Shown: positions 4,878-62,484, numbered from the stretch's first letter. The stretch: 64,000 nt of DNA from Leucoraja erinacea (GCF_028641065.1 NC_073393.1:19902001-19966000), one strand, 5' to 3'. Program-made: numbers and translations. Notes: a model not told the origin generated them from the sequence alone.

Positions 4878-4909
4878 CAGAGAAGCTTAATGAAAGGGAA
4901 ACATCCCAA
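4878..4909 (+). CDS. Gene A: candidate first cytoplasmic exon (AEKLNERETSQ)
   Basis: acag|CA...CAA|gtgagc, 32 nt, phase 1 to phase 0. Same phase pattern as the short tail exon of gene B. Short, so weak support. Confidence 0.35.
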
Positions 4910-5431
4910 GTGAGCTTTTAATTAAGTGCAGACAGAAGGCTGGCAAACTAGTCTGTGGCCAAATAAATAAAATATAACACTTAAATGCACAAAACGGGGA
5001 CCAGTAAGAGAAGGCGCCCCCGTTCAAATAAACCCTAGCTAGTTGAATTTGAAGACACAAGAGAGAACATTTACTTTCAATTCGATCAACATTGGGAAAT
5101 GATGCAGATGAGGCCTTCAGCAACTATTTCCATGCAAGAACATAAAAAAAAAATTAAATCACTCTACTTAGCAGTATATTTTGTTTGGATTGATGCTAAT
5201 GCATAGTCTTATGTTTAGCCAATGATCACTGGACAACCCAGAGCAGCAATAAATGAATCAATTTGTTCTTTCGCAGAAGAAAATATAATATTAATATAAT
5301 AACATTTTTCATATTAATAAAGGCATTGGTATTTTGCTACAATTTACAATGTTCATTACTGGCAGCGGTGGTGTATTTTTAGAAATATGTTGATTGATGT
5401 AATAATTGTAACAAATTGTGATAACTTTCAG

Positions 5432-5566
5432 ACAATGCAATCCGAATGTGATCCAAAGTTAACGTATACTACTCTAAACATCGCTGGTCTAAAACCATCT
5501 ACTAAATGCAGATACGTTGAAGAAAGCACGGTGTATGCCCAGGTAAGTGTAACAAGAGCCAATTAA
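5432..5566 (+). CDS. Gene A: ITIM/ITSM cytoplasmic exon of an inhibitory IgSF receptor whose 5' part lies outside the window
   Basis: tttcag| TMQSECDPK-LTYTTL-NIAGLKPSTKCRYVEES-TVYAQV-SVTRAN*. ITIM LxYxxL and ITSM TxYxxV; aligns with the last exon of gene B. Internal donor CAG|gtaagt after 5542. Confidence 0.75.
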   Translation, partial: TMQSECDPKLTYTTLNIAGLKPSTKCRYVEESTVYAQVSVTRAN

Positions 5567-5633
5567 TGGAATAACTCACGAATCAAAGAAGAATGCATGT
5601 TAACCAATTATCTATGCAAGGTGACTGTCGTTA

Positions 5634-8066: not shown

Positions 8067-8147
8067 ACAATACATGGCCGACCTGAACGCATGGCTGAAG
8101 AAATGAATATCAATACAGGAAACATCAACCAAAGTGTAAAATCGTAA
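8067..8147 (+). CDS. Gene A: candidate alternative terminal exon (TIHGRPERMAEEMNINTGNINQSVKS*)
   Basis: ttttacag| acceptor, phase 0 compatible with the donor after 5542, open to TAA. Confidence 0.35.
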   Translation, partial: TIHGRPERMAEEMNINTGNINQSVKS

Positions 8148-10133
8148 TCTGCCTTACACTGCAAAATTCGCAGGAATGTTGAGTAGTGTCAAGGCCGCCA
8201 TATTTTCCAGTGCATTTGGAACATTATCGCTGGAAGTTCTGTATTTGTTGGGTTTTGTTCAGTTTATTTATGGATCCATGCTTTCCTGATTGAAAACACG
8301 CCAATTTAGTCGAATATTCTGCAAACAATATGGATTGTTTCAAGCTCTTACTGACTAAAAAATTGCTCTTTTGTACCCAACCGGCCCAGTGACAGCCCCA
8401 GTTATGAATTTTCCAATAGTATTCATCTTTCAGATCATGCAAATTGTCCATTAACTAACGTAAGGATCTGTATGTAAACTGACGTGGAGATGTTTTTGTA
8501 CTCAGGGGTCATATCTTATCGAACAGTAAATGTTGCAAGAATTAAAAATAGACTCTTCAGGTTAGACCGCTAATCGGCACGAGTAGAAGCCGGGTGCATA
8601 CGGCTTTTTTAGTACGAGTGGGACATGTACAGTCGATACAGTCGGTGTTTCCTCGTCAATTGAATTGTCCGCAACATGGACGTCATCTTTTTATTGTGAG
8701 TGAACATTTCCGTGCTAAATCTATATCATACCAATATATCGTAGTAATTATTTTTGCTGTTAATCTCTGTGAATCAATAAACCCGTTTTACTTCTTGAAT
8801 GTCAGTGTTGCATATTATTTCTGCCTTCTTGATTCTTATATGGCTTGAATTAGAAATCTATTCTGACTATCGTAACTGTCTATTACCTCAATAATTTGAC
8901 ACGCGTGTAGCAGGTCGCCATTCAGCCTCATACGCTTGAGGTATACATGACAATTCTTTCAAATTTCACCCCATAAGTGTTCTAAAATGTAACACCTCAC
9001 ATTTCCCTGTATTCCATTCCATCAACCATTCCTCAGCCCACCTGGCTAATCGATCCAGATCCTGCTGCTATCTTTCACAACAGTCTTTACTATCTGCAAA
9101 ACCACTCACTTTTGTATCATCAACAAACTTGCTAATCTTGCCCTGTATGTTCCCATCCAAATGACACGACCACAGCTGGGAAGAAACTGTCACTGGATCT
9201 GGACGTATGCGTTTTCATACTCTGTCCCTCTTGCCTAGTGGGTGAGGGGAGAAGTTGGAGTGTTCGGGTTGAGACCCTACCTTGATTATACCGATGGCTT
9301 TGCGAGGCAGCGCGCAGTGTAGATGGAGTTAATGGCAGGGAGATGGTTTGCGTGACGGTCTGGGCTGGTCCACAATTCTCTGCTATTTCTTGCGGTCTAG
9401 GATGGAGCTATTCCCACGTCACCTGTGATACATCCCGATAAAATGCTTCATACGATGCATATGTTCAGTTTTCTTAAACTATGAGGAGTACAGACAGGAT
9501 AGATGTTCAGGGTCTTTATCTTAATATTGTGGAGATATGTTTAACTGGCGAGGGTATGCTTAAAATGAGATGAGTAGAAAAGCGTGGGATAATTATGTAC
9601 ACAGAATGTGGTTACTACCATGGACGAGCTGACAAAAATACAGCCTTTCACTTGCATTTCCCCAGGCACTTAGATAGGAAAAAAGTAGAGCGATGATCTT
9701 ATGCGGTTAGCTAGGATTTGCGGGCAAAGGCATTTATTGTGCCGAACAGCCCTTATTAAGGGTAACATTCATCAAAGTAGATAATCTCTCATTAAAATCC
9801 CCTGCTCACTGCGCATTGTCTTGTAAATGATTGTCTGTACGATCTGCGACACAATGTTAATCAGGCTTATGTAATTGAAATATCGTTCGCTTCAGAGTGA
9901 ATGGACGCTAGCTGGTTTCACAGCTATTGAAAAATCCTGATTCCTGCATACTCTGTTTCATTGTTCTTCGCCGTTCTTGAATGTTTCAGAGAAGCGGCGA
10001 GATCCAGAGTTGCATAGGTCAGTTTATGTTCTGACACTTCTTTGACCTGTCGAAAAATAATCAGAGATCATGAGCTGCTGATTCGCCCATATGGGCGACG
10101 TACACGGATTTTCCTTGCAGTACACTTCCGCTT

Positions 10134-10229
10134 TTACAATACCTGGCCATAGGTTGTTCGTTCTTCGTGGCGTTTGTTTTTCGTAGTTTTCTTCTGTCCG
10201 CTGAAGTTCATATCTGCATACGAAGGATA
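10134..10229 (-). CDS. Gene B cyt2 exon YPSYADMNFSGQKKTTKNKRHEERTTYGQVL*
   Basis: gttccctcag| acceptor, phase 0; YADM and TTYGQV (ITSM). Homologous to gene A 5432-5566. Confidence 0.75.
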   Translation of the reverse strand, partial: YPSYADMNFSGQKKTTKNKRHEERTTYGQVL

Positions 10230-16200: not shown

Positions 16201-19134
16201 CCTTGGATTGTCATTATGTTGGAAAAGGTGCAGTAAGGATTCACCTAGGTATTACCTGGAATTCGTGGATGGAGTTATCCGGTGATGCTGAGCAGGTTGT
16301 GAGCTCTTCCCATGAGGCATGGGAGGTTTACCTAATTCAAGTATATAAAATTATGATGGGCGTAGAGAAAGTGAATGCTTACAGTCGTTTTACGAGGTTA
16401 CGAGGGGTCCAAGGGGCAATTTCTTTCCGAGGAAGCTACAGAAGCGTACACAATTGTGATTTTCAAAGGAATTTTGGATAGATATTTGGATAGGAAAGAT
16501 TTAGAAGGGAAATGGTCAAATGCGGAGAGATGGGTCTAGGCCAGAATGCCAACTTGCTTGACGTGGACGGGGCGGGCCGAAGGGCCTTGCTTCCATGCTG
16601 TAGAGCTCTATATGATCGGAGATAAACAGCGAGTTCCAACGTCCGCTATTACACAAACATGCAAACACAACTGTCATCTTTGCGCGATATCTCTTACTAA
16701 CCCGTATCTAGTTTCGTAGACTGTCATACCTTTCCATTACAACAAAGACATGCCCGCAATCTCCATCCAAATACTTAAAAACGGTCTAGCGTAAGTTTTG
16801 GGTGGGAATTCATGAAATGTCTTGACATAAAACAGTGATATATCTCAGGACGTTATTGAAGGTATAAACCTCATACCCATTCCAGGAAAACTGTGAGTTT
16901 CAACGGTCGGAACCAGGAGGGTGACGTGAAACACGTGGCAACTATAAACCGATCGGCGATCCACTACATGCAGGAAGCTGGAAGCAACGTATAATCCCTC
17001 TTCGTTCCGTATTTTAGTGGTATTTATTCCAGAAGTTATTTCTTGGCCATCTTTATACCAGGTGAGTTCACAGTCCGCCGGGAAAAACGGAGCAGTCGTA
17101 CAGTTTAGGGCCAGGGAAGGAGCGTTCATCTGTTTTATCTTCAAAGGCGTCGGTGACACTGAAACGATTTAAGACAAAGGAGTAAGTACCCCTATATCTT
17201 TATAAGACAATATAATCGCTTTCGAAATGTGTAATACCATACCTCTTGGGCGTTCCTTTAATAGCAAAGTATTTTAATTATTTTGTTGGAAATATATAGT
17301 ACAGTAAACCGGCGTTATAACGCAGTTGGACAGGAGCACTATATCTGAGGGCTAGTTGAGGCAGATGTCAACACCTATCACTTTCCCCAATGCCTCCATT
17401 CTGTCCATGCGAGGAATGTAGAAGTCTGGGGACGAGGGGTGAGCCAAGTCTCTGAAATAGAGCACAGAGCATTCGGTCATCTCTCTCTAATAAAGCTACC
17501 TTGCCTCTGGGATTTCCTTGTCATGGGCGATTCTCTTCTTTTTTAATGCTAAACAGTTTTAGTTTATTATCACGTGTACCGAGCCACAGTGAAATGCTTT
17601 TTGTTGTTTGTTATTCAATGAGCGAAAATACTAAACATGATTACAATTAAGCCGGCCGCATTGTACAGATTCAGGATTACAGGATAACGTTTAGTTCAAG
17701 ATAAAGTCGAGTGAAGTCCGATGAAAAAGATAGTTTGAGAATCTCCAGTAAGGTAGATGGTAGGACTTGACCTCTCTCTAGTTGGTGACAGGACGGGGTC
17801 GGGTATCTGCTGGGAACGCAATGGTGCTACACCAGACAAGGCAGAGTTCAAAGTGGTACAATCAAACAGAAAATTGCGTTAATTAACTCGTAAAGGGAGT
17901 TATTTTTGTATTATATGCAAAACACGCTGAACGGGAGAAGCAGCTTTATGTATGCGTGAAAGTCTTGTGAGAGGCAACGCGCAGAATAATGTATACGTTT
18001 GACATATGGAGTTGTATCTAATGTTACCCGGAGAATAAATAAAGTTTAGAGTGAAAAGGGTAGATATAGGAGCAACAATAAACAATACTGGGAATCTGTG
18101 GGAAGATCCGATCATGTTTGAAAATGTTTAAGATGAACTTTTAAAAGTAGTGTGATAAATTTTATTAGGATAAACGAATTTGGTCAAAGTAGTGGACGTT
18201 GTCTGCGCGGACCAGAAATGACTTTGACAAGGTTGCGCACTTGTACGTTGCTCTGGAACATTAGATCCCATGTGGTCCAGGGAGAGCTCGCCATTGGATA
18301 GAGAAATGGCTTCATGTAAGGAAGCAAAGGGTGATGGTGGAATATTGTATTTTGCGGACTAAATTCCGGGGAAGGCGAGAGGGGAACACTTACCAAGAAC
18401 CTAAGGGGCATCCTTTTCATGCAGATGCTGGTGTGTATATGGACTGAGGTGCCAGATGAGGTCGCTGAGGCAGCTACAACTTTTACCAGACATTTGGACG
18501 GATGCATTGGGGATAAGGTATAGAGAATGATAAGGGCCTATTACGGTGTGACAGTATTGTGATTCGAAACATCAAGTAAGACTCACCGTGTACAATAATC
18601 CTCGTGCCATTGCTTTTGGAAATCTTTCCATTCCCGCCTCTCACACTGCAATAATAGATCCCGGAGTCACGGAAGGTCGCGTTCAACAGATGTAATTCGG
18701 CAGATCCCTTCAGGACATTGTGCATTGTCATCCTCCTGTTTGCGGTGGGATTCAACGTCCCTTCTTGACCGTCTCTCTTCCAGTATACATCCACCAGTGC
18801 ATTCTGACCGAAGTTCGGGAAAGTACAGTATAGGGATACATTTTCACCTTTCACTTTCGTTACCTCATCAGGAATCTGACGCACCCTGAACGAGGAGGCC
18901 TCTTCAGTAACTGTCAAAATTAAAAAACAAACGTTAAACATGTGAAATGACAATGAACGGATTGATAAAAATGCAAATAGCTGAAATAGCTCGACCCAAA
19001 AGTAAGTTGCACATCTTATACTTTTCGCGGATTGACCTTTTCCCTGTTATTTTCCTTTAATAGAGGGAAATATGTTAACCTGTGTAACTCATATGAAGGA
19101 TCGAGAGACACAGCAGCACAGCAAACATAAACAT
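10134..19134 (-). CDS. Gene B: non-rearranging V-C1-TM IgSF receptor with cytoplasmic Tyr motifs (SIRP/NCR3-like architecture), putatively inhibitory or switch type
   Basis: Six exons with GT-AG boundaries and consistent phases: L 19080-19134, V 18587-18910, C1 16877-17158, TM 11530-11640, cyt1 10866-10909, cyt2 10134-10229. Confidence 0.85.
10866..10909 (-). CDS. Gene B cyt1 exon APENIEARTHHFEKQ
   Basis: ctctactag|...CAG|gtaat, 44 nt, phase 1 to 0. Paralogous exon at 40021-40063. Confidence 0.7.
11530..11640 (-). CDS. Gene B TM exon GTRVKLVYFLAGGFAICVLIIPALVCYVRRYKLHSTE (uncharged TM)
   Basis: ttttccctttag|...G|gtaag, 111 nt; hydrophobic stretch followed by basic stop-transfer residues. 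Confidence 0.85.
16877..17158 (-). CDS. Gene B Ig C1-set exon
   Basis: LNCTTAPFFPADCELTWYKDG...GLYVASSFL...YSCHVFH C1 signature; phase 1-1 exon, 282 nt. Confidence 0.92.
18587..18910 (-). CDS. Gene B Ig V-set exon with J-like G strand
   Basis: GENVSLYC...VYW...LHLLNATFRDSGIYYC...SNGTRIIVH; ttgacag|...G|gtgagt, 324 nt. Confidence 0.93.
19080..19134 (-). CDS. Gene B leader exon MFMFAVLLCLSILHMSYT
   Basis: Hydrophobic signal peptide, phase-1 donor AG|gttaac; conserved in gene E. Confidence 0.8.
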
Positions 19135-24799: not shown

Positions 24800-25294
24800 A
24801 AGTACTGCAGATAATGGTTTACATCGAAAGTTGGGGACCCGGGGGGAAGAAGAAGCTCCATCGGCCGGCCCGCGGACAACTTCTACCGCGGGCGCGGCAT
24901 GGACTTACCATCACCCCTGGAGGGGAGCTTCGACCACCGGCCCTGCAGTTTGCGGTGCTTCTTGCTGCGGCGCGGCGGGAACTTTAAATCTTCGACCGCC
25001 GGCCTGCGGCCTACACCATCCTGAAGCCGCGGTCTCCGGTGGGGAGGAGCCGATCCTGGACTTACCTTGACTTTACTTTGTTCTTTACCATCTGGACACC
25101 CGCAGCAACGGCTGCGGAGGTGGAGGTCCCGACCACGGGGGGAAATGGAAAATGGAGGACTGGCCAATTTCTGTGCCTTCCACCACAGTGATGAATGCTG
25201 TGCTGGATGTTTGTGTAAAATTTTTATTGTGGTTGTGTGTTCTTTATTATTGTACCGCTGCTGACAAATTCATTTCACTTGCACTTTATGTGCA
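24800..25294 (+). mobile_element. GC-rich non-coding retroposon (same family as 58730-59655)
   Basis: Close match to 59150-59615, including GGGAACTTTAAATCTTCGACC and CATTTCACTTGCACTTTATGTGCA. Confidence 0.65.
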
Positions 25295-25756
25295 NNNNNN
25301 NNNNNNNNNNNNNNNNNNNNNNNNNNNNNNNNNNNNNNNNNNNNNNNNNNNNNNNNNNNNNNNNNNNNNNNNNNNNNNNNNNNNNNNNNNNNNNNNNNNN
25401 NNNNNNNNNNNNNNNNNNNNNNNNNNNNNNNNNNNNNNNNNNNNNNNNNNNNNNNNNNNNNNNNNNNNNNNNNNNNNNNNNNNNNNNNNNNNNNNNNNNN
25501 NNNNNNNNNNNNNNNNNNNNNNNNNNNNNNNNNNNNNNNNNNNNNNNNNNNNNNNNNNNNNNNNNNNNNNNNNNNNNNNNNNNNNNNNNNNNNNNNNNNN
25601 NNNNNNNNNNNNNNNNNNNNNNNNNNNNNNNNNNNNNNNNNNNNNNNNNNNNNNNNNNNNNNNNNNNNNNNNNNNNNNNNNNNNNNNNNNNNNNNNNNNN
25701 NNNNNNNNNNNNNNNNNNNNNNNNNNNNNNNNNNNNNNNNNNNNNNNNNNNNNNNN
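25295..25756. other. Assembly gap (N run)
   Basis: 462 N bases. Confidence 0.99.
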
Positions 25757-27073: not shown

Positions 27074-27125
27074 ATGATGACACGTATCTTACTGCAATTG
27101 ATTGTTCTTCACATCAGCTGCGCCG
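27074..27125 (+). CDS. Gene D leader exon MMTRILLQLIVLHISCA
   Basis: Signal-peptide-like, G|gtata donor, similar to the B/E leader (LHIS vs LHMS). Confidence 0.78.
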
Positions 27126-30100
27126 GTATATTTTACTCTTGCTATAGACAGTCCGACCGAAAGTTAATTATCAGTTTATATGTTTGCTGATCCTTTATCT
27201 TTATTTATTTTCTCCTTTCGTGCAATTTTCAATTAATTTGGTCAATACCTCGCTTTAATCCTAAACCTTATAGTTTGATTTTTCGTTTCCCGACAGCTGG
27301 TGGCGATGGTCCGTTGACCGTAACACAAGTTCCAGAAGCAGTTTTGATGCGGGGTGACTCGGCAGTGCTTTACTGCATTTATCCAATCTTCTCAGACAAC
27401 AAGCCGTACACAGTGCATTGGTGGAGAGATGGGGATAATAGATTCCTGGAAGAAAGTGCAGATAAACGAATCCAGTTTTATTTCCTGAGAGGGGGAAGCG
27501 CTGTTTTACGGGTGGAGAACGTGACAGTGAAGGACGCCGGGCTCTATTTCTGCAGCTTGACCCGTTCCAAAGTTTTAAACGGGACTGGTACAAAGCTGGT
27601 AGTTTACGGTGAGTTTCGGGGAGAGGAGTGAGCCAGATCGGTTAACTTCACCACCTCAAAGCGATTAGCTCAATCACGTTGAAGAAATTCCGCATTATTC
27701 ATCACCTGTGTCCTTTGAAATAACATGATTTGTGTGATTGGTTAGAGAGTATTTTTGACGCAATTATCAAAGAATGCGAATAGACTGATTGAGAGAGTAA
27801 ATGACGCCTTCCACATCTCCTGCTTGACAGAATTATAAAACCTTTCGCGTATATTTTAGAATTGCTTTAACACAGCGGGAATGGAAACCAACGACACAGG
27901 TAGTTGGAATTGAAAATATGTAGAGTTCCGAATGTGGTACTGATCAAGGAGATTATTATTTTTAATTGATTTATTTGCATCTGCCATCTGTTTTATCTGG
28001 TGTAAGGAATTACAAGTGTATTGCCCCTGTCCCACTTAAGAAACCTGAACGGAAACCTCTGGAGACTTTGCGCCCCACCCAAGGTTTTCGTGCGGTTCCC
28101 GGAGGTTGCAGGTGCTTGCCGGAGGTTGCAGGTAGTGGAAGCAGGTAGGGAGACTGACAAAAACCTCCGCACGGAAACCTTGGCGCAATTACCGGTCTAA
28201 CGCAATATCAATGTTATTATTGTACTGCACCCTCTCCGGTGGTAGATGTTCCAGGTATGCAAAACGTCCTCTTCTCCTTTACATTTTTCTCGTTTTACCT
28301 AAAAACCCTGCCACATAGTCCTTAATTCCACTATTCAGGGGAAAAGACCCCGTCTATGCTATGAGTGGCCCCGATATTAAAAACAAAAACGTCTATTAAG
28401 TTACTCCTCTGCTTCCTTCTTTCCATTGAGAATAAACGCAGTTCACCAAATGTCTCGTTATAAAAAAGGTCCTCTATTTCAGTCAACATTGGTACCATGT
28501 TTAACCGTAGTATAAATTTGGTCACACTTCTGATTGCCCCGGATTACTTGAAATGGTATAGCAGCCGTGAAGCGAGTCAATCATTGAGGAAAGCAACATT
28601 CAAGATCTATATTGTTACATTTAGTCTGCAGAAGGGTCACCACCCGAAACGTCACCTATTCCTTTTATCCAGAGATGCTTCAGCGCGCTGGGTTACTCCA
28701 GCTTTTTGTCAGGTTTAACGCAGAATCTACAGTTCCTTCCTACACATTGTTGCATTAACGTGTACTTTCCGCTCACCTTCCAAGCGATAGAAAACTTCCC
28801 CCTGGTCCAAGTTTACAATATTTTTTCACACAAGGACACATTTTTCTGTCCTTCTAGCTCAAACATATTTTTGACCTCAAGTTACTGCTGAATAAATCTT
28901 CTGCTCGATTTATTTATTCCATATAACCATATAACCATATAACAATTACAGCACGGAAACAGGCCATCTCGGCCCTACAAGTCCGTGCCGAACAACTTTT
29001 TTTCCCCTTAGTCCCACCTGCCTACACTCATACCATAACCCTCCATTCCCTTCTCATCCATATGCCTATCCAATTTATTTTTAAATGATACCAATGAACC
29101 TGCCTCCACCACTTCCACTGGAAGCTCATTCTACACCGCTATCACTCTCTGAGTAAAGAAGTTCCCCCTCATATTACCCCTAAACTTCTGTCCCTTAATT
29201 CTGAAGTCATGTCCTCTTGTTTGAATCTTCCCTATTCTCAAAGGGAAAAGCTTGTCCACATCAACTCTGTCTATCCCTCTCATCATTTTAAAGACCTCTA
29301 TCAAGTCCCCCCCTTAACCTTCTGCGCTCCAGAGAATAAAGACCTGACTTATTCGACCTATCTCTGTAACTTAGTTGTTGAAACCCAGGCAACATTCTAG
29401 TAAATCTCCTCTGTACTCTCTCTATTTTGTTGACATCCTTCCTATAATGGGGCGACCAAAATTGTACACCATACTCCAGATTTGGTCTCACCAATGCCGT
29501 GTACAATTTTAACATTACGTCCCAGCTTCTATACTCAATGCTCTGATTTATAAAGGCTAGCATACCAAAAGCTTTCTTTACCACCCTATCTATATGAGAT
29601 CCCACCTTCAAGGAACTATGCACGGTTATACCCAGATCCCTCTGTTCAACTGTATTCTTCAATTCCCTACCATTTACCATGTACGTCCTATTTTGATTTG
29701 TCCTGCCAAGGTGTAGCACCTCACATTTATCAGCATTAAACTCCATCTGCCATCTTTCAGCCCATTTTTCCAAATGGCCTAAATCACTCTGTAGACTTTG
29801 GAAATCCTCTTCATTATCCACATCACCCCATATCTTGGTATCATCTGCATACTTACTAATCCAACTATTTCAACAACGACAAAGAATATATTTGTAAAAT
29901 TTAGATTGTCGAGCTATTATTATGGGTTACATTTTGTACAATTATATCACCAAATTATAATATAAATCGTGAAGACGTTTTGAAAATTCAAGTTGTTTAA
30001 GAAGGAACTGCAGATGCTGGAAAATCGAAGGTAGATAAAAATGCTGGAGAAACTCAGCGGGTGCAGCAGCATCTATGGAGCGAAGGAAATAGGCAACGTT

Positions 30101-38300: not shown

Positions 38301-38551
38301 GAAATTGGATGAACGTTAATGAACGTTTGATGATTTCGCAGCTATATTAAAATCTTCATTCCTGCATATTCTGTTACGTTATTCTTCTCCGTTCTTGGGT
38401 CTTTCGGAGAAGCGATGAGATCCAGAGTAGCATTGGTCAGCTTATTTTCAGACACTTCTTTGACCTATCGAAAAATAATCAGAGATCGTTAGCTGCCGAT
38501 TCGCCTATATGGGCGACGTACGCGAATTTATATTGGAGCACCCTTCCGCTT

Positions 38552-38647
38552 TTATCTTACCTGGGCATTGGTAGTTTGTTTTTCGTGCCGTCTGTTTTTC
38601 TCAGTTTTCCTCTGTCCGCTGACGTTCAAATCTGCACTCGTCGCATT
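38552..38647 (-). CDS. Gene E cyt2-homologous exon NATSADLNVSGQRKTEKNRRHEKQTTNAQVR* (Tyr-less; may be out of frame or untranslated)
   Basis: Colinear with B 10134-10229, same gttccctcag acceptor; three Tyr codons read AAT, AGT, AAT. Confidence 0.55.
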   Translation of the reverse strand, partial: NATSADLNVSGQRKTEKNRRHEKQTTNAQVR

Positions 38648-41600
38648 CTGAGGGAACATATATTGGAAGAGAAATAAACTCCGCATTTACAAACAACTGC
38701 GAAGACGAGGAAACATAAAACAATGGGGTGAAAGTTGGGTGTGCTATACGCTATAAACGGCTACTTCCCTGGGATAAGATCCCTAAAAAGTAATTGAAGT
38801 AATTGGTTTGATGTTCCTGAATAATTAGTGACTATTAGCCAAATCTTGACACGTGTGGTGCAGAACACTGACCGGAAGTTTGTTGGATGATAACCTCTGG
38901 GAAAATATCCAGGTGGCGCGGTTTCTGGGCTCAGACATGTTAGCAATATTTTCCGTCATATATCAGTACGAGCTACTGCACAAAAAATGTCGTGTGAGTT
39001 TCGAATTAGAACAGAATGGGCCTCGGTGATGATGCTTCACGGAGTGTTTAATTCGCTTGACACAGACGGATTAGACATAAACTGAAGGTAGAGAATAGGC
39101 GGCGTTTCGGGTCGAGACTCTACTTCAGTTTGATCAGTCTGAAGAAGGTTATCGACCCGAAACGTCGCCTATTGCTTCTCTTCATAGATGCTGCCTCGCA
39201 GGCTGAGTTTCTCCAGCATTTTTGACTACCTTAGATTTTTCCAGTATCCGCAGTTCTTTCTTAGACATAAACTGAAAGTTAACATGCAGGTATTAGTTGT
39301 CCTAGTTTGAGGAAGGACATTATTGCTATTGTGAGAGTGCAGCGTAGGTTCACCAGTTTAATTTCCGGGATGGCGTGACTGATATATGATGAAAGAATGG
39401 ATCGACTGGGCTTATATTCACTGGAATTTAGAAGGATGCGTCATCAAACATATAAAACTATTTAGGGATTGGACAGGCTAGATGCAAGAAATGTTTCCCC
39501 TTGTTGGGGGAGCCCAGAACCAAGAGTCACAGTTTAAGAATAAGGGGTAGGCCATTTAGGACTGAGATAAGGACAAACGTTTTCACCCAAAGAGCTGTGA
39601 ATCTGTGGAAGTCTCTGCCGCAGAAGGCAGTGGGGGCCAATTCACTGGATGCATTCAACAGAGAGTTGAATATAGCTCTAGGGTCTAGGGATATGGGGAG
39701 AAAGCAGGTACAGGGTACTGATTCTGGATGATAAGCCATGATCATATTAGATGACGGTGCTGGCTCGAAGGGTCCAATGGCCTACTACTGCACCTGTTTT
39801 ATATGCTTCTATGTAACTGTTTGGGAGAAAGATTCGCAAGCGCAGGTCGCTGACGATCATGGACTATACCATAAGAATACGGGAGGATAAGAAAAATTGC
39901 AAACGAGGCACATAGAGAGTTTCACGAAAAATTGAACCATCCTGTTCGCCCATCAATGTGATTATAATTACAGGCGTCCATTTGCAGAACATGATACGAC
40001 AGGTTATACAAGAAAATCACTTGTTTTCAAAGTAGTGGGTTATGTCCTCAATATGTTCTGGGGCTAGCAGAGAACATAAACAACCAAATTTAATTATCAA
40101 CATGTCACAACCTGCCGGCCGATAATCAGTTGAGAATCGATTTGTGACCAGATTCGTTCGGCTACAGAATGTGATCATTGCGGTCATGCTATTCTTGTTA
40201 TTTGAACAAATCCTCTCCTCGTTAGTCCTACTGCTGAGGAAAAGCGCGTGGAAAAGTTCAAAACCTCTGGTTTGAATACGCTCTCCTGTAATAACTGCCC
40301 TTATTTAAACAACCCGACCTTTGCAACATTTCACATAGTGTTAACAGCGCCATCTTGTATTACAAACGATAACAATGCTTTTACAGCCAACGGCCATAAT
40401 GCTACGGCCGGAGAAAAGGGCCCTGGTGTTTAAATCGTTACATGAGCTCATCTCGTTGCTCCTTCAATTGAACATTGCTATTTTCGGAGAAAACACGAAA
40501 TATTGTAGTTATTCAGCGGGTTAGGCATCGTCTACGGGGATCATCGATAGATGAAGTTTCGGGTCAGGACCCTTCTTTACACGTGACTCAAACCCAACCC
40601 CCCCCCCCCCCCCCTTTCCATTGCCTCTCCAGATGCTGCATAAATAGCCGAATTATTCCAGCACTGCGTTTTGCATCTGCAGTTCCTTATGTCGCTAATT
40701 TCAGACAAGGGTGAAGTCGCATCTTACCTTCAGTACTGTCTAATTCGTACCACCTGACAAAAAATACCACCGCTAGAATAATTAACACGCATATGGCAAA
40801 TCCACCTGCCCGAAAGTAGATGAGTTTAAGGCCTGTTCCTAAAGGGAAATGAAAGCTGAATATTAGAATTTTTCAGAGACGTTATCTTCATTAAATAATC
40901 AGATTACACGAAACAGGGAATTACAGGATGGGTTCCACATTTTCTCTCATCTCTCAAATGCATGACTGCTACACAGCATTCCATCTGCCACTTGTTTACA
41001 CCCACGCTCCCAAGCTGTCCAAGTCCTTCTGCAGACTCCCTGCTTCTTCAACACTATCTGCACCTATATTCATATCATCGGAAAACCTGCCGACAAAGCC
41101 ATCAATTTCATCCTCTAGACAATTAACATATAATGCAAATTGTAGCAGACTCAACACCGACCCCTGCAGAATACCAGTATTAAAACGTAGCTAACCACAA
41201 AAGGCCCCTTTATTGCCACGGTTTGTCTTCAGCTAGCAAGCCAATCTTCAATCCGTGATAATTCCTAATGCCATGCGCTTCTATTTTGTTTAGCGGTCTC
41301 ACATAGGGCACCTTATCAAAGGCCTACTGAAATTCGTTGAACGACGCCATTGGTTTTCTTCACTACCTGCTGTACTTGCACGTCAACTTTCAGTGAATGG
41401 TGTACAAGGGCACCCTGGTCACGCTGTAACCCATTGAGATTACAATCTGTCCCCTTGTTTTTGCCACCAAAGTGGGTAACCTCACATTTATCTATATTAT
41501 ACTGCATCTGCCACGCATCTTCCCACTCACTCAACCTGCCCAGGTCAACCTGCAACGTCCTAACATCCTCTTCAAAGTTCACACTGCCACCCAGCTTTGT

Positions 41601-44600
41601 GTCATCTGCAAACTTGCTAGTGTTGCTCCTAATTCCCTCTTCCAAATCATTAATATATATGGTAAACAGTTGCGGCACCAACACCGAGCCTTGCGGCACT
41701 CCACTCGTCACTGCCTGCCATTCTGAAAATGACCCGTTCACTCCTACTCATTGCTTCTTGTCTGCCAACCAATTTTCTATCCATGTCAATACCCTACCCC
41801 CAATATAATGTGCTCTAATTTTAGTCACCAGTCTCCCATGCGGGACCTTATCAAAGGTTTTCTGAAAGTCTAGATACACTACATCCACTGCCTCCCCTTC
41901 ATCCATTTTACTTGTCACATCCTCAAAAAATTCCAGAAGATTAGTCAAGCATGATTTTCCTTTCATAAATCCATGCTGACTTGGACTAATCCTTTTACTG
42001 CTATCCAAATGCTCCATTATTACCTCTTTAATGATTGACTCCAGTATCTTTCCCACCACCGAAGTTAGGCTAACTGGACTGTAATTCCACGTTTTCTCTC
42101 TCGCTCCGTTCATGAAAGGTGGGATAACATTAGCTATCCTCCAATCCACAGGAACTGACCCTGAATCTATTGAACATTGGAAAATGATCACCGGTGCGTC
42201 CAATATTTCTAGAGCCACCTCCCTGAGGACAATGGGATGCAGACCATCGCCTAATTATAATTTATTTCAGTTTCTCTACCCCCTTTGATCCTCTGTCCTC
42301 GAGTACTTCTGGGAGATTGTTTTGTCTTCCCTAGTGAAGACAGATCCAAAGTGTCAGTTCAACTCCTCTGCCATTTCCTTGGTGCCCATAATAATTTCAC
42401 CCGTGTCTGCCTTCTGATTTTGCTACTCTTTTTCCCTTAACATATCTAAAGAGGCTTTTGTTGACCTTCTTTATATTCCTGGCCAGCTTCCCCTCGTACT
42501 TCATCTTTTCAGCCGTATTGCCCGTTTTGTTTCCTTCTGTTGTCCAATGAAAGTTTCCCAATCCTCCGGCTTCCGACTACTCTTTACTGTGTTATGCATC
42601 TTTTCTTTTAATTTTATTCTATCCCTAACTTCTCTTGTCAGTCACGGTTGCCTCCTACTCCCCTTAGAATCTGTCTTGAAATGTCTGGGAGCACAGAACA
42701 GATCAGACCGTTCAGCGGAACGCACATCAGCCGGAATTATCGCTTATCCGCATTATATGTATAACCTTTCGAACATTTCCTTGTATCTCCTTTCTTTCAT
42801 TGGCCTCTTCTGTTTGAATCTCATCACAGATTAGCAACAACGAAAAATAAATCATCTGAGTTAATGAAAAATAAATCATCTGTTTTAATGCTATAAAATC
42901 TGCCTTGGCCTCTGTCTTGTGGTATTGGTCCCTTGGAACTTGAAATATGTTGGATTACCGTCCCTCTCCAGTCTGCAATGTTACAGCGTTAAGACTGAGA
43001 ATTAATTTGCATATAAACAGAAAACAATGCCCTTATTATGCAGGGAAACAGCTTTACAAGTATGTGCTCGTTGGTGTTCTGTGTGCAGTCCTGGTCATCC
43101 TGCCTATACGTAGCATGTCATTATGTTGGAAAAGGTGCAGAAAGGATTCACCAAGGTATTACTTTGATGGCTGGAGTTATCCGGTAATGCTGAGCAGGTT
43201 GTGACCTCTTCCCATGAGGCATGGGAGGTTTACCTAATTGAAATATATAAAATTATGAGGGGCGTAGAGAAAGTGAATGCTTACAGTCGTTTTTGCCAGG
43301 GTAGTGGATTCTAAACAGGGAAGGTTACGAGGTTCCCAAGGGGCAATTTCTTTCCGAGGAAGCTTCAGAAGCGTATTCAATTGTGGATTTTCAAATGATA
43401 TTTGGATAGATATTTGGATAGGAAAGATTTAGAAGGGGAAATGGTCAAATACGGGCAGATGGGTCTAGTCCAGATTGCCAACTTGCTTGACATGAACGAG
43501 GCGGGCCGAAGGGCCTTGCTTCCATGCTGTAGAGCTCTATATAATCGGAGATAAACAGCGAGTTCCAGCGTCCGCTATTACACAAACATGCAAACACAAC
43601 TGTCATCTTTGCGCAATATCTCTTACTAACCCGTATCTAGTTTCGTAGACTGTCATACCTTTCCATTACAACAAAGACATGCCCACAATCTCCATCCAAA
43701 TACTTTAAAACGGTCTGGCGTACGTTTTGGGTGGGAATTCATGAAATGCCTTGACATAAAACAGTGATATATCTCAGGACGTTATTGAAGGTATAAACCT
43801 CATACCCATTCCAGGAAAACTGTGAGTTTCAACGGTCGGAACCAGGAGGGTGACGTGAAACACGTGGCAACTATAAACCGATCGGCGATCCACTACATGC
43901 AGGAAGCTGGAAACAAGGTATAATCCCTCGTCGTTCCGTATTTTAGTGGTACTTATTCCAGAAGTGATTTCATGGTCATCTTTATACCAGGTAAGTTCAC
44001 AGTCCGCCGGGAAAAACGGAGCAGTTGTACAGTTTAGGGCCAGGGAAGGAGCGTTCATCTGTTTAATCTTCAAAGGCGTCGGTGACACTGCAAACAATTT
44101 AAGACAAATGAGTTAGTACCCCTATATGTTTATTTAGAAGACAATGTAATCGCTTTCGAAATGGATAATACCATACCTGCTTGGGCGTTCCTTTAATAGT
44201 AAATTATTTAAACTATGTTGTTGGAAATATATAGTGCAGTAAACACTTGTTATAACGCAGTTGGCCAGGACCACTATATATGAGCGCTATGTGAGGCGGG
44301 TGTCACCACCCATCACCTTCCCCAACGGCTTCATTCTGCCCATGCGACGAATGGAGAAACTATCGGCATGGACGGCTGAGTCTGGGGAAGAGGGGTGAGC
44401 CAAGTCTCTGTGAAAGAGAGCACAGAGCATTCGGTCATCTCTCTTTGTTAAAGCTACCTTGCCTCCGAGATTTCCTGGTCATGGGGGATTCTCTTTTTTT
44501 TTGTGCTTAACAGTTTTAGTTTATTATCACGTGTACCGAGCCACAGTGTTTGTTGTGTGTTTTTTGTTGTGTGTTATTCAATCAGCGAAATTACCGCACA

Positions 44601-48200: not shown

Positions 48201-48964
48201 AAGGCGAGAGGGGAACACTTACCAAGAACCTAAGGGGCATCCTTTTCATGCAGATGCTGGTGGGTATATGGAAGGAGGTGCCAGATGAGGTCGCTGAGGC
48301 AGCTACAACTTTTACCAGACATTTGGACGGATGCATTGGGGATAAGGTATAGAGAATGATAAGGGCCTATTACGGTGTGACAGTATTGTGATTCGAAACA
48401 TCAAGTAAGACTCACCGTGTACAATAATCCTCGTGCCATTGCTTTTGGAAATCTTTCCATTCCCGCCTCTCACACTGCAATAATAGATCCCGGAGTCACG
48501 GAAGCTCACGTTCAACAGATGTAATTCGGCAGATCCCTTCAGGACATTGTTCATTGTCATCCTCCTGTTTGCGGTGGGATTCAACGTCCCTTCTTGACCG
48601 TCTCTCTTCCAGTATACATCCACCAGTGCATTCTGACCGAAGTTCGGGAAAGTACAGTATAGGGATACATTTTCACCTTTCACTTTCGTTACCTCATCGG
48701 GAACCTGACGCACCCTGAACGAGGAGGCCCCGTCAGTAACTGTCAAAATTAAAAACAAACGTTAAACATGTGAAATGACAATGAACGGATTGATAAAAAT
48801 GCAAATGGCTGAAATAGCTCGACCGAAAAGTAAGAGTTGTACATCTTATACTTTTCGCGGATTGACCTTTTCCCTGTTATTTTCGTTTAATAGAGGGAAA
48901 TATGTTAACCTGTGTGACTCATATGCAGGATCGAGAGACACGGCAGCACGGCAAACATAAACAT
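38552..48964 (-). CDS. Gene E: paralog of gene B with TM Arg and degenerate tail (putative activating partner)
   Basis: Exons L 48910-48964, V 48416-48739, C1 43806-44087, TM 40728-40838, cyt1 40021-40063 (1 nt short), cyt2 homolog 38552-38647. Confidence 0.82.
39087..39260. mobile_element. Fold-back PLE-derived element, E-specific
   Basis: Flanked by direct repeat TTAGACATAAACTGAA; absent from the B copy near 10690. Confidence 0.7.
39277..39812 (+). mobile_element. CR1 LINE 3' fragment, E-specific
   Basis: Similar to 2520-3060. Confidence 0.8.
40017..40063 (-). CDS. Gene E cyt1 exon APEHIEDITHYFENK*
   Basis: Homolog of B cyt1; 43 nt to the AA|gtgat donor, or read-through to TGA at 40017-40019. 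Confidence 0.6.
40728..40838 (-). CDS. Gene E TM exon GTGLKLIYFRAGGFAICVLIILAVVFFVRWYELDSTE
   Basis: tttccctttag|...G|gtaag, 111 nt; CGG (Arg) at 40810-40812. Confidence 0.85.
41345..42672 (-). mobile_element. CR1 LINE RT fragment
   Basis: ORFs 41316-41741 and 41748-42218 with GVPQGSVL, KFADDTK, DFQKTFDKV. Confidence 0.88.
43806..44087 (-). CDS. Gene E C1-set exon
   Basis: 6 of 94 aa differ from gene B C1; intact splice sites. Confidence 0.92.
46560..47068 (-). mobile_element. CR1 LINE 3' fragment
   Basis: AIEGVQRRFTRLIPGMSGLSYEERL, nearly identical to the 1235-3064 copy. Confidence 0.85.
48416..48739 (-). CDS. Gene E V exon
   Basis: 6 of 108 aa differ from gene B V; intact splice sites. 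Confidence 0.93.
48910..48964 (-). CDS. Gene E leader exon MFMFAVLPCLSILHMSHT
   Basis: Homolog of the B leader with the same donor. Confidence 0.78.
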
Positions 48965-56958: not shown

Positions 56959-57077
56959 ACTCTTTGAACTAAACACCTCAACCGACCTGTTTCAACGTTT
57001 TGAACGTCACTCAAAACATACCTCAGATCATCCATCTTAACATTTTTTTATTAACCTTTTCCTGCCACACCTCCATT

Positions 57078-57420
57078 TCAAACTAATGGGTCATATCCCC
57101 GATCTTGGCTGTTCCATGGGCTGAGCTGCTGCTCCCCCACCCCCGTGCTCATCCCTCGTGCATAAATCCTCCTAAGTAACTCCAAGGACACCGCCTTTAT
57201 CTCCCAGTTCAATTGCACCCCGTCCGTTTTATATAGGTCCCATTTGTCTAGTAAGAAAACCCAACAATCCATATATTTTATGCCCATCCACCTACACCAG
57301 GGCCTTAGCCAAGTATTCACTTGGATTATTCTGCTATTCCTATCGGTACCGTTTTGTAATCCCGAGATCGCAATCCTGGAGGTCTTGTTTTTTTTCACCG
57401 AATACCGAACTCCCTGAATT
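57078..57420 (-). mobile_element. Degenerate CR1 ORF1 (SGNH/esterase-like) remnant
   Basis: IAISGL...NTWLRPWC...WDLYKTDGVQLN pattern; decayed CR1-like sequence continues toward ~54850. Confidence 0.55.
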
Positions 57421-58729: not shown

Positions 58730-59655
58730 TGAACAGTCGGTGGGGGCGCTGCAAGTCGGCAGCCCTGCCAGCAGCCTGTCCGTTTTTTCTACTTTTTTGT
58801 TTATTTTAGTGTGTTTAAATGTGTGTTTTTGATGTTCCTCTATGTGTCTTGTGTGTGTGTGTGTGGTGGGGGGGGGGGGGGTAAACCGTTTCGGTCGCCT
58901 CCCCCATGGAGAGGCGACATATCCATGTCGCCTCCCCCGTGGCCTAACATCGAGGATCGGTGCGGCTTTTCCCGGACTCTCGGCCTGGAGCGGGCGAGCC
59001 CTCGCCGGTGCTCGCCGGAGGGGAGCGCTCCGTTCACTGGTGCGCGGCAGCCTGAAGCTGCGGTCTGCGGAGCTCCAGCTGGCGCGTCGTCCTGGGCCTG
59101 GGATCCCTCGACGGGGACCCGGGAGGAGAAGAGCTCCAACCGCCGGACCGCGGCCAACTTCGCCCGCGGGCGCGGCGGGAACTTACCATCAGGAGCGGGG
59201 TCCCTCATCCCTGGACAGGAGCTATGACGGCCGGCCCTGTGGTCTGCGGTGCTTCTGGCTGCGGCGCCGCGGGAACTTTAAATCTTCGACCACCGGCCCG
59301 CGGCCTACACCAACCTGAATTCGCGGTCTCCGGTAGGGGAGCACCGATTCAGGACTTACCTGGACTTTTTACCTTGTCTGCACATCTGGACGCCCGCAGC
59401 GGCGGCTGCGGATGGTTGAGGTCCCGACCACGGGGGACATTGGAGGAGGACTGGCCAAATGTTGTGCCTTCCACCACAGTGATGAATGCTGTGGTGGATG
59501 TTTGTGTTAATTTTTTATTGTGTTTTTGTGTGTTCTTTTTCGTTGTACCGCTGCTGGCAAATTCATTTCACTTGCACTTTATCAGTTTTATTCGTCACTT
59601 GCACTTTATGTGCAAGTGACGAATAAAACTGATTGGTTGATTGATTGATTGATTG
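58730..59655 (+). mobile_element. GC-rich non-coding retroposon with (TTGA)n tail
   Basis: 3' half matches 24860-25294; ends AATAAA plus TTGA repeats. Confidence 0.65.
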
Positions 59656-60608
59656 CTTTACATTTACTTACTCTAATATAATCTTGACGTTAATCTGTGA
59701 GCCTGTCGCCCGTTTAACATCTTAAATATAAGCTTTCCTAAAATGAGGAAAAAATGTACTCGGGAGGTCCGCTTCAGTTCATGTAAGGTCTAATAATTAG
59801 ATTATATGCAGCCGGTAATGAAGACCTCTTAGTTTAATCGTTTCAGGCGGAGTATAAAAATAAGGACATTTGAATGAGTGAATGATTACGCTCTCTACAT
59901 TCTTTTACTTTCGTGCGGTCTAATTATTGCCTGACCTGTTCCGGATTGAGCCACGCATTTAGTTTCCATTCTTCAAAGTCCCATCAAGTAAGCGCGTAAA
60001 TGTTCTGTGATTGCACATGAAGGAGATCATTCTAGCAGATGCAGAGCCACATGATTGACGCATTCTTTCCTTTCACATCGGAAAATTCATTGCCGATTTC
60101 GTTGAACTCATCTCAACTTTAGGCGTGTTTCCTCTGCGGATTTTGCATGTAGGTACAGTTTTTTTTATACACAACATAGTTTCAATTTGTGTTCATGGGT
60201 AGCTCACCCCAATGATTTATGTTTCAGGTGACATTGAAAGCGAACCACATTAATGGGTTGAAATTACATTGCCTCGATTGGGGCAAGGTTATCCTATGAA
60301 GAGCATAATTTTAGGAGGGGGGGGGGGGGGTCTTATTTGGCATCTTATTTTAATTAGATCCTCTCACGAGGCCGAAAATCGAGAAATGGTCGATGTGCGT
60401 ACTGTTTGATGTCCTCAAATAAAACAACCTTCTATTTCCTGACTCAATTTCCGCCTTCAGGCACTCAGCCAAGCCCTATATTAAAAGCAACGCATTTCTC
60501 GACCATGTCATGGGGTGGCCGATGTGATGAGGAGTCAGCGTAGAATATACCGTGACGATTATTAACCAGACCTTCATCTTTCCCAGCCAGGCGTGCTTAG
60601 TAGTCGAT

Positions 60609-62484
60609 ATGTTTCTGAAAGTGTCACCTTGGACGATGTATTTCCTTGGAATTTTGTATGCGGGTAAATTAGGGCTTCTATTGTTTTTTATTTATGTGTC
60701 CTCAAATTAGGCAGATATGATAGTTGTGCCTTATAATGTTATGTCGAATTATCCATAAAGTCATTGCTGTCGTATGAGTTCTGGAAAGGAGGGTAATTTA
60801 CGAAACCTTTACGAGGACACAAAAAGCGGGCATAATTATTATCTGGGCTCCCATTGTAAATATTTGGGCTGAGTGCAATAAGATTTTTGCCTGCAGTGTT
60901 ACATTTCCATTGCTGTATATCAATGACTAAACTGGATTTGCACCATCTATTGACAGCTGCTGAGAACAGGTCGGGCAAGACGATATCGAATGTTGCAAAT
61001 CAGAATACGGTGATCAGTGGCATAAATTTTACCTGTCGGTGTCCCTTCCCCTTCAATGTAAATCTGTCAAACCTGGAGGTTTTCTGGTGGAAAGATGGAA
61101 ATAAAGGCTTCCTGAAAGAAGATAGCAGGAAAATCTTCACTATACGGGCAGGAGGCGCCTACCTTCACCTGCTGAATGTCACGGTCTCGGACGCCGGAAC
61201 ATACAAATGTCTTGCAAAACAAGCGGGCCGACCGGTTGGGAAGGAAACAAGAGAGCAACTGATCGTATATGGTGAGCGAACGGCACTTTAGTTGCTAGAC
61301 AAAAGTGCTGGAGAAACTCAGCGGGTGCAGCAGCATCTATGGAGCGAAGGAAATAGGCAACGTTTCGACCTGAAACGTTGCCTATTTCCTTCGCTCCATA
61401 GATGCTGCTGCACCCGCTGAGTTTCTCCAGCACTTTTGTATACCTTCGATTTTCCAGGATCTGCAGTTCCTTCTTAGGTACTTTAGTTGCAGCTCGAATT
61501 TGAATTTTGCTTCGCAGAAGTCTTTAATCCAGAATACAAATGTGAATAACGTTGGAAAATTATTTGAGATTGGTTCGTTTGAAAATATAGGTCAGAGGGC
61601 ATGACAGCAATTATATTTGAGTTGATGTATATTGAAGGTAGTGAGTGTAAGATGAATAAATACAACGGTTTCAATTTGACACCGAACGCCGAGGCGGGGA
61701 TCCTCCTGATGTTTTCCTAATGATAATGTTATCAACATATAATGCTGTGTATTGAAAGAGCGAGGTTTTTACTTCCACAAAATTATTGAAATATAAATTA
61801 TATTTCTTGCGCCGAATTAGAGAAACAATAAATGTTAGTCAAAGCATTCTCTGTAAGACAGTCCAAGTCTGCAACTGTTTATGACTGCTTATATTGGGGA
61901 GTTGAAGTATTCACAACAGTACTGTGCCTTTGAAGAGTTCAAACTTGAAAGTTGATTCGCGCATGTTAACACAAGAAACAAGTATGCAAATTAGTGTTTT
62001 TTTCTTAAATTAAATGTCAAGGGAATGCGTCAAGGGGGGAGTCCATTGCGATGAATTACACCTTTATCTGGCTCCCGATTTAAAAATTATGATGGAATTA
62101 AGTAGCGTTGGAAAAAATGCGATTAGATGATGTAATCGACTCTTCTCCTTTCTTTTAATTCTATTCCTCTTTACTTAGCTGTCCCTTCTCCTCTGAAGAT
62201 TGTATCTGTTCGATCTAGAAATGCTGCGACTGATTTCCTGAAAATGCAGTGCAGAACGGCTGCCTTTTACCCGAAAGAATTTAATCTCACCTGGCATACA
62301 AATGGTTCCGTCATCCAATCTGGATTTCGGCATGAACAAAGATCAACGGCAGACGGATTGTATGAAGTTATCAGCTTTTTAGAGGAGAAACGGACAGTCA
62401 AAGAAGGAACCGTTTACACATGTAAAATTATTCACCGTTCTATGCTAACTCCAGCAACTGCCAACTACACGGTTCCTCGTGCAG
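60609..62484 (+). CDS. Gene F: L-V-C1 IgSF gene of the same family; TM and tail not found in the window
   Basis: L 60609-60663 (MFLKVSPWTMYFLGILYA), V 60957-61271, C1 62179-62484; GT-AG, phase 1 throughout. Confidence 0.85.
60957..61271 (+). CDS. Gene F V exon
   Basis: GINFTCRCPF...VFWWKDG...LHLLNVTVSDAGTYKC...QLIVY G|gtgag. Confidence 0.9.
61296..61479. mobile_element. Fold-back PLE-derived element 25 nt into the gene F V-C1 intron
   Basis: Near-perfect inverted arms; 11-bp TSD ACTTTAGTTGC (61285-61295, 61480-61490). Confidence 0.78.
62179..62484 (+). CDS. Gene F C1-set exon
   Basis: AVPSPLKI...MQCRTAAFYPKEFNLTW...DGLYEVISFL...YTCKIIH; cttag|...G|gtaac. Confidence 0.9.

Follow-up and report, generated by a model that had tools for sequence, protein, structure and literature searches.

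Probable V-C1 receptor genes with pre-joined V exons in a 64-kb window of the Leucoraja erinacea genome

A membrane-bound, non-rearranging VJ-C1 chain has long been the proposed form of the precursor of antibodies and T-cell receptors (TCR). Cartilaginous fish are known to carry germline-joined clusters, in which a V-J exon without recombination signal sequences (RSS) is followed by a C1 exon, and the pairing of inhibitory with activating receptors, together with the homogenisation of their ectodomains, is familiar from KIR, Ly49, PIR and SIRP. Among the described genes, UrIg has a VJ domain with three C domains and is secreted (PMC12227049, PMC10751288), UrIg2, which is anchored in the membrane, has a VJ domain with at least nine C domains (PMC12227049), and NCR3 has been treated as a VJ-domain gene linked to the major histocompatibility complex, or MHC (PMC12227049, PMC10751288). 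The subject of this paper is a 64,000-nucleotide stretch of the genome of the skate Leucoraja erinacea (GCF_028641065.1 NC_073393.1:19902001-19966000), called the window throughout, which very probably holds four genes (B, D, E and F), and the tail of a fifth (A), whose products would be cell-surface receptors with the build of a pre-joined light chain of an antibody. There is equally good reason to believe that these genes lie inside a large, unnamed cartilaginous-fish family with the plan V(J), C1 and transmembrane (TM) segment.

Pre-joined V exons and the shape of the receptors

The sequence-only reading of this DNA had announced a cluster of at least five VJ-C1 genes between positions 4878 and 62484. 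Hidden Markov models (HMMs) built from the candidate exons, and run on all six-frame open reading frames (ORFs) of at least 25 residues over the whole window, found exactly four V and four C1 exons, scoring 155-182 and 158-168 bits, respectively, with the next-best ORFs at about 10 bits. They make up four V+C1 pairs, i.e., B (minus strand, 9.9-18.9 kb), D (plus, 27.1-34.6 kb), E (minus, 38.3-48.7 kb) and F (plus, 60.6-62.5 kb). Four of the announced genes are thus present as V-C1 pairs, but the fifth, gene A on the plus strand, is in the window solely as its last two cytoplasmic exons, and neither the HMM scan nor the mapping of family proteins located a fifth V or C1 exon there. Nothing Ig-like is found at position 4878, whereas position 62484 is exactly the donor of F's C1 exon. 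All four C exons match Pfam C1-set (38-50 bits, cut-off 21); the V exons of B, D and E lie above the cut-off of Pfam V-set, and that of F passes only Ig_3, ig and I-set.

The gene models combine the reading of splice sites with the mapping of natural homologues, the exons being left unjoined, and the joins proposed here are those that the splice consensus and the colinear RefSeq models from other species suggest. The window genes were searched exon by exon, and full-length searches and the fold used the natural protein P0001 or the family alignment A1. All of the Ig exons are of phase 1-1 with ag/gt boundaries (the C1 exons reading ag...G|gt), and all eight are open, with the canonical Cys/Trp/Cys kept and the splice sites intact. 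Every V exon stays open through its G strand, in a single frame, and ends at a phase-1 G|gt donor, which splits a Gly codon as in J segments, and one C1 exon follows it, so that the arrangement described from the sequence alone, V plus a J-like strand in one exon and then a single C1 exon, was found in all four genes. That description had continued to a TM exon, which was located in B, D and E; the TM and tail exons of F must lie past the end of the window.

The J-like character of the G strand is graded among the genes, and the earlier description of it holds accordingly: D has the full motif (NGTGTKLVV), B and E have half of it, with one Gly (SNGTRIIV), and in F (GKETREQLIV) the GxG is lost. 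The consensus for the family is NGTGSxLxV, with the two glycines invariant, or nearly so, in 33 aligned members, and the Phe of the J motif FGxGT is absent in the window genes. Both strands of the window were scanned from end to end for RSS (heptamer with CAC and at least 6/7 matches, nonamer with at least 7/9, spacing of 12 or 23 ±1), and no heptamer/nonamer pair came up, against 0.8 expected, which extends to all of the window what had been claimed for the surroundings of the V exons. With V and J-like strand together in a single exon, and no RSS in the window, its genes are non-rearranging.

Each protein would be a type I membrane protein with an ectodomain like one light or TCR chain, i.e., a V domain encoded together with its G strand by one exon, and after it a single C1-set domain. 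The AlphaFold model of P0001, a protein of Mobula (pLDDT, the predicted local distance difference test score, 81), has two sandwich domains and then a long helix, and Foldseek gave antibody light chains as its best PDB matches, with about 215 columns aligned at 19-26% identity. This modelled likeness, an exon plan of V-J and then C1, the absence of RSS, and the label "Ig lambda-1 light chain-like" that RefSeq gives to some members would all be expected if the window held germline-joined IgL or TCR clusters. The C1 exons, however, end in a phase-1 donor and are followed by TM exons and by exons for tails with immunoreceptor tyrosine-based inhibitory and switch motifs (ITIM and ITSM), which largely refutes germline-joined IgL and led us to reject it. 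The low identity to solved light chains and the missing Phe of FGxGT speak against it as well, as does the clade that the window genes form, in trees that left out skate IgL and TCR chains, with about 80 TM-bearing cluster representatives (among 150 listed), and we give it practically no credence.

A cartilaginous-fish family with paired members

In the word-index search, the V ORF of B gave one match, the family alignment 31, and an alignment of bony-vertebrate V-C1 proteins gave only frogs. The single match, and the only close relative from that index, was P0001 of Mobula hypostoma (326 aa), and the proteins closest to the window genes are those of manta rays, a stingray and a skate. With full-length P0001 as the query, an exhaustive search gave 913 proteins at E<1e-3, of which 48 passed E<1e-30. 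Of the 150 cluster representatives listed, some 80 are colinear over V, C1 and TM, and such members have either long tails with motifs of the LTYAxL/TEYAxI type or short tails with an Arg in the outer part of the helix. All of the top-ranked members that were looked up by name came from a shark, a ray or a chimaera (Callorhinchus). The window genes belong, as had been predicted, to a diversified multigene family, which in these searches was confined to sharks, rays and a chimaera; the window itself would be a piece of a multi-megabase cluster of its non-rearranging immune-type receptor genes.

B, D, E and F can each be matched, one exon after another, by proteins of Mobula, Heptranchias and Heterodontus, with identities of 48-74%. 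Each window gene has partners of its own that resemble orthologues, at 50-74% identity: those of B and E are found in Mobula and Hemitrygon, and then in Heterodontus and Heptranchias; those of D are Mobula P0081 and Heptranchias P0015, and those of F are Chiloscyllium P0042 and Heterodontus P0043. The window genes accordingly fall into three lineages, and all three have counterparts in rays as well as in sharks (support 96-100 in the V tree and 96-100, by ultrafast bootstrap or UFboot, in the C1 tree), and the three lineages must therefore predate the split of sharks and rays. In a quick V tree, the family and the window genes form a clade with a Shimodaira-Hasegawa-like approximate likelihood ratio test (SH-aLRT) value of 94, and the chimaera protein nests within the family (SH-aLRT 97). 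The family is thus both large and old, with lineages older than the shark-ray split and a chimaera member nested within.

The names under which RefSeq lists the members are SIRP-alpha-like, tapasin-related-like, Ig lambda-1 light chain-like, CD276 homolog, B7-H6-like, H-2 class I-like and uncharacterized, contradictory labels of the kind that had been foretold (Ig light chain-like, SIRP-like). The labels "tapasin-related", "CD276", "B7-H6-like" and "MHC class I-like" were considered and rejected, since an N-terminal tapasin domain, a second V/C pair and groove domains are all absent. Some predicted proteins of the family (P0003 and P0198 of Mobula, also P0021, P0047 and P0124) run from V straight to TM and tail without a C1 domain, an NKp30-like layout; at least two of these C1-less predictions are labelled isoform X2, and no C1-bearing isoform was seen for those two loci. 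One protein of Amblyraja radiata, P0010, is V-C1-C1, and in the tree its C1 domains come out as sisters that are nearly identical.

Within the window, B and E are duplicates in a segmental duplication of roughly 9.7-25.3 kb versus 38.2-59.6 kb, and their divergence is uneven. The synonymous divergence (dS) is 0.015 in the V exon, 0.064 in the C1 exon and 0.23 in the TM and tail exons, where the ratio of nonsynonymous to synonymous divergence (dN/dS) is 0.9. A single base change has turned a CTG (Leu) codon of B's membrane segment into CGG (Arg) in E, and three of the four tail tyrosines of B are replaced in E (Y to S, N and N), the tail of E still being an open frame that ends at the ancestral stop. 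From this comparison, B and E would be a paired-receptor couple, in which the anchors and tails diverged and the ectodomain exons stayed near-identical, gene conversion being the simplest cause; it looks like the textbook case of an inhibitory gene giving rise to an activating partner, the ectodomains of the two being kept alike by conversion. In the inhibitory members (B and, to judge from its tail, A), phosphorylated ITIM and ITSM tyrosines would recruit phosphatases of the SHP-1/SHP-2 type. The activating-type members (D, and E if it is alive), which have an Arg in the outer third of the membrane helix and no working ITIM, would pair with an adaptor that has an acidic membrane residue and an immunoreceptor tyrosine-based activation motif (ITAM), e.g., FcR-gamma, CD3-zeta or DAP12. 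The tail of A and the ectodomain of D both have Mobula P0081 among their best matches, the ectodomain of A preceding the window, and this shared match makes A and D a possible second pair, inhibitory and activating, within one lineage.

Several observations weigh against the picture of a set of intact, functional receptor genes, and they are gathered here. No in-frame ATG adjoins the V exon of E, because a run of T5 in E, at about 48751-48755, replaces the T6 run of B, and E would therefore be dead, or supplied by an unseen upstream leader exon, or mis-assembled at the homopolymer. The leader of B reads unsplit, which is unusual. In B, the phase calls for one more exon, of some 70 nt, after the TM exon and before that at 10143-10229; it was not located in the window, nor was the short last exon that should follow the TM exon of D. 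The V exon of F combines a score under the Pfam V-set cut-off with the loss of the GxG motif, and any signalling partner, ligand, cell type or dimer of these receptors is a predicted one. Finally, depth was zero over the leader, V and C1 exons of D, both in three sets of contigs presumed to be RNA and in one oligo-dT RNA run (a sample of about 5%). Those runs that seemed to contain about 10% of the words of gene D contain its intronic repeats and nothing else of it, and zero depth on D's exons is no evidence of silence. The V-C1 intron of D (28000-30400) contains dispersed repeats, including a fragment of a long interspersed nuclear element (LINE) reverse transcriptase at 29288-29821, and these are very deeply covered, on both strands, in the RNA run and the three contig sets guessed to be RNA, the flanking exons being without reads.

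Taken at their most severe, such points could mean that the cluster is largely dead, i.e., a set of decaying duplicates without function. To the missing start and lost tail tyrosines of E, the B-E dN/dS of 0.9 in the TM and tail exons and the absence of reads on D's exons, one can add that the introns are full of LINE fragments. Against this stand the eight open Ig exons out of eight, with canonical residues and splice sites in place, the split leaders kept in D and F, the tail of E that is open to its ancestral stop, and three lineages conserved at 50-74% identity among skate, manta/stingray and sharks, which together make general decay very improbable.

Exon map and surroundings of the genes

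The exons of the five genes, and the one assembly gap between B and D, are collected in Table 1.

Table 1. Positions of the receptor exons and of the assembly gap in the window, with the evidence for each.
Feature	Position	Strand	Evidence
A, internal cytoplasmic exon, ...KLTYTTL...TVYAQ (ITIM + ITSM-like)	5432..5542	+	ag/gt bounded; 19 family proteins match; best Mobula P0081, 58% identity
A, last coding exon (TIHGRPERMAEEMNIN...stop)	8067..8147	+	P0081 C-terminus, 59% over 22 aa; acceptor and stop read
B, last exon, ITIM LTYATL + ITSM TEYAGI, then stop	9924..10046	-	tblastn with P0001, P0002, P0181
B, cytoplasmic exon (PSYADM...TTYGQ)	10143..10229	-	family-protein mapping
B, TM exon (VYFLAGGFAICVLIIPALV), helix without charged residue	11530..11640	-	hydropathy scan, tblastn
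B, C1-set exon	16877..17158	-	Pfam C1-set 49.6 bits, HMM scan, splice sites
B, V exon, J-like G strand SNGTRIIVHG, unsplit leader from ATG 18941	18587..18941	-	Pfam V-set 50.9 bits
Assembly gap, 462 N, B-D intergenic	25295..25756	.	flanks are dispersed/duplicated repeats, GC 0.56-0.60
D, leader exon 1 (MMTRILLQLIVLHISCA), phase-1 donor	27074..27125	+	sequence reading
D, V exon, full J-like motif NGTGTKLVVY, donor G|gtgagt phase 1	27297..27608	+	HMM, Pfam; 56% identity to Heptranchias P0015
D, C1-set exon	30570..30872	+	Pfam C1-set 48.2 bits, splice sites; 74% identity to Mobula P0081 over 69 aa
D, TM exon with Arg (NTIVGWIRAGLIAIIIVIFIVIYK; ...GWIRAGLIAII...), phase-1 donor	34518..34610	+	hydropathy scan, sequence reading
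E, last exon, LTNATL (ITIM Tyr replaced), TEYAGM kept, stop placed as in B	38342..38464	-	comparison with B
E, cytoplasmic exon, both tyrosines replaced (TSADL, TTNAQ)	38561..38647	-	comparison with B
E, TM exon with Arg (IYFRAGGFAICVLIILAVV; ...IYFRAGGFAI...), CGG for B's CTG	40728..40838	-	hydropathy scan, comparison with B
E, C1-set exon	43806..44087	-	HMM, Pfam; 96.4% nucleotide identity to B's
E, V exon	48416..48739	-	HMM, Pfam; 98.4% nucleotide identity to B's
F, leader exon 1 (MFLKVSPWTMYFLGILYA), donor G|gtaaat phase 1	60609..60663	+	resembles P0042, P0043 leaders
F, V exon, G strand kept, GxG lost (GKETREQLIVY)	60957..61271	+	HMM; 54-60% identity to shark P0043, P0042
F, C1-set exon	62179..62484	+	Pfam C1-set 38.3 bits, splice sites

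The V exon of B is 58% identical to Mobula P0001, and an acceptor-like cag ends at 18911, inside the leader/V reading of that gene; the leaders of D and F are split. On the opposite strand in the intron between the C1 and TM exons of B, an ORF at 15977-16285 (plus) encodes a stretch like a membrane helix (LVGVLCAVLIILGLSLCWKRC); it matches no family protein and may be due to chance.

The window DNA is that of a vertebrate, with many LINE reverse-transcriptase fragments and no genes besides those of the receptors. Those at 1403-2966 (plus), 20584-21569 (minus), 41316-42218 (minus) and 46748-47266 (minus) are mutually 78-88% identical, and one of them lies between the tail exons of A and anything upstream. 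B and D are divergent genes, with about 8 kb from the ATG of B to the leader of D, and the gap in this interval is 6.3 kb from the former and 1.3 kb from the latter, with no family exon adjoining it. Dispersed repeats are present on both of its flanks, the right one beginning with an 80-bp dispersed repeat, and the left one being a GC-rich block with an 83% identical copy at 59113-59582. This GC- and CpG-rich block (24833-25289 and 59113-59582, also 25757-26200; GC 0.56-0.60, CpG observed/expected 0.8-1.07), the first copy of which the gap adjoins, sits 1-2 kb upstream of the leader exons of the plus-strand genes D and F, and could be a shared promoter or 5' region, or merely a repeat.

The family among known receptors

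Outside the cartilaginous fish, the nearest proteins are of two kinds: a V(J)-C1-TM group of frogs, turtles, coelacanth and bichir, named NCR3-like, tapasin-related-like or SIRP-like in RefSeq, and the genuine SIRPs of birds, turtles, lungfish and coelacanth. The former group, which we take to be, possibly, the PRARP family (Fu et al. 2019), shares the exon logic of the skate genes and scores 31-42 bits with the window V HMM, the best outside cartilaginous fish, versus 4-12 bits for SIRP V domains (the C1 scores are similar); the protein searches gave no PRARP-named sequence, and none of genuine NCR3, TAPBP/TAPBPL, IgL, TCR, MDIR or NITR that could enter the trees. The trees cover the family, the bony group, SIRP, and UrIg2-like, IgH-like and beta2m-like domains, and within this set the family lies outside SIRP, UrIg2-like and IgH-like domains. 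Neither of the outcomes named beforehand as refuting the sequence-only reading occurred in them. In the C1 tree (72 domains), the family with the window genes is a clade (support 96/84), as is the bony V-C1-TM group (98/90), and these two are on one side of a 97/87 branch, with SIRP d2/d3, UrIg2-like, IgH-like and beta2m-like domains opposite. The V tree likewise returns the family, the bony group, SIRP (98/91) and the UrIg2-like V domains as clades, their mutual order being unsupported, and joining the family to the bony group is not rejected (p 0.26). In sum, the family is its own clade, is light-chain-like in shape, would work in the manner of SIRP/KIR-type paired receptors, and in its C1 domain leans to the bony "NCR3-like" V-C1 genes. 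It differs from that group in the anchor, which has a Lys in the four bony members aligned, and in its size: in these searches the bony group looked small and conserved in comparison with the large inhibitory/activating family of the cartilaginous fish.

With regard to NKp30, a shark NCR3 (NKp30) family, MHC-linked, has reportedly been described in nurse shark by Kinlein et al. in 2021, and the window genes might be that family, with the C1 domain simply belonging to NCR3 outside mammals. The nurse-shark sequences NCR3A-H are listed as MT914154-MT914161 in PMC12227049. Human NKp30 lacks a C1 domain, consistent with its single-domain PDB chains of 112-126 residues. As in NKp30, the V domains of the skate genes are non-rearranging with a G strand of the type ...NGTR..V, and the membrane helices of D and E have an Arg near their outer end in an xRAG motif. 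The V of B aligns with human NKp30 end to end (26.0 bits, E 1e-4), and NKp30 is among its best full-length single-V PDB matches; some Mobula RefSeq predictions (P0003, P0198) are V-TM-tail without C1, like NKp30; and the bony group to which the family C1 is sister (97/87), often labelled "NCR3-like", has a V that reaches 42 bits against NKp30. However, TCR V-alpha equals NKp30 in its score with B (26.3 bits), and the frog-group V scores level with V-kappa. The PDB searches were swamped by antibodies and therefore provide only a rough ranking, in which the top 60 for the V-exon profile include the V domains of PD-L1, pIgR and CD276 but not NKp30. The V tree leaves the family apart from the "NCR3-like" group, and since the Arg of E is one base change from the Leu of B, the RAG motif can be convergent. 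As for the combination of such an Arg with a short tail, D has the Arg and a tail whose end was not located, E has it with a long tail, and A and B have the ITIM tails of inhibitory members. Lastly, NCR3 has been published as a gene with a VJ single exon or VJ domain, and UrIg presented as the novel non-rearranging VJ-C1 (PMC12227049, PMC10751288), whereas in the skate a C1-set exon follows every V exon. Identity with shark NCR3 is on balance unlikely, and so, to the same degree, is an existing description of the family under the NCR3 name; no description of a chondrichthyan V-C1-TM paired family was found in the literature searched, from which Kinlein 2021, Fu 2019, Flajnik 2023, and Ohta and Flajnik 2015 were outside.

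A broader proposal, which we regard as speculative and put no higher than those two, is that the family, the bony V-C1-TM "NCR3-like" genes and mammalian NKp30 share one ancient membrane-bound VJ-C1 ancestor, from which NKp30 would have lost the C1 domain, while cartilaginous fish would have kept the ancestral form and expanded it into megabase-scale paired inhibitory/activating clusters. If it is true, the loss of C1 in NKp30 is foreshadowed by the predicted C1-less proteins of Mobula.

In terms of logic, SIRP is a close comparison, for its genes too do not rearrange, its V is J-like and followed by C1-set domains, and its members, which form inhibitory/activating pairs, have either ITIM tails or a basic residue in the membrane; SIRP is also the commonest RefSeq label in the family. 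Could the window genes then be true SIRPs, co-orthologous to SIRP-alpha/beta? The whole-family profile runs colinear with SIRP-alpha d1-d2 (117 bits, among antibody chains, with UrIg2 second-best at 137 bits), bird and turtle SIRP-alpha are among the nearest non-chondrichthyan matches, the ESM Atlas neighbours of P0001 include SIRP-alpha clusters, and an approximately unbiased (AU) test does not reject a clade of family and SIRP C1 domains (p 0.19). But the skate genes have one C1 domain and SIRP two, and the sole V-C1-C1 member seen, P0010, has two copies of its own C1, so similar that they must stem from a recent internal exon duplication mimicking the SIRP domain count. In addition, the SIRP V domains form a clade apart from the family V, which does not group with SIRP d1, the window V HMM scores them far below the bony V-C1-TM group, and the best C1 tree places SIRP d2/d3 across the 97/87 branch. 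We consider a true SIRP family quite improbable, more so than NCR3, and continue to favour a family in its own right.

That family already has the inhibitory/activating pairing and ectodomain homogenisation seen in KIR, Ly49, PIR and SIRP, and a name for it, with a defined position in relation to NKp30, SIRP and PRARP, would tidy the contradictory labels in the databases. Like UrIg and UrIg2 (the structure of the latter being PDB 9dmx), it is an elasmobranch system of non-rearranging, single-exon VJ with C1-set sequence. It differs from them in having a single C1 domain, a membrane anchor and signalling tails, and the UrIg2-like C domains, in proteins recognised as such by what their architecture suggests (P0009, P0067 and P0075), group with IgH-like domains across the 97/87 branch from the family. 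From the Ig light chain, its best structural match by model, it is set apart by its membrane and cytoplasmic exons. It is this simple V-C1-TM plan, unlike the three C domains of the secreted UrIg and the nine or more of UrIg2, that would make the family a tractable candidate for the pre-RAG form of the antigen receptors and for the origin of innate paired receptors.

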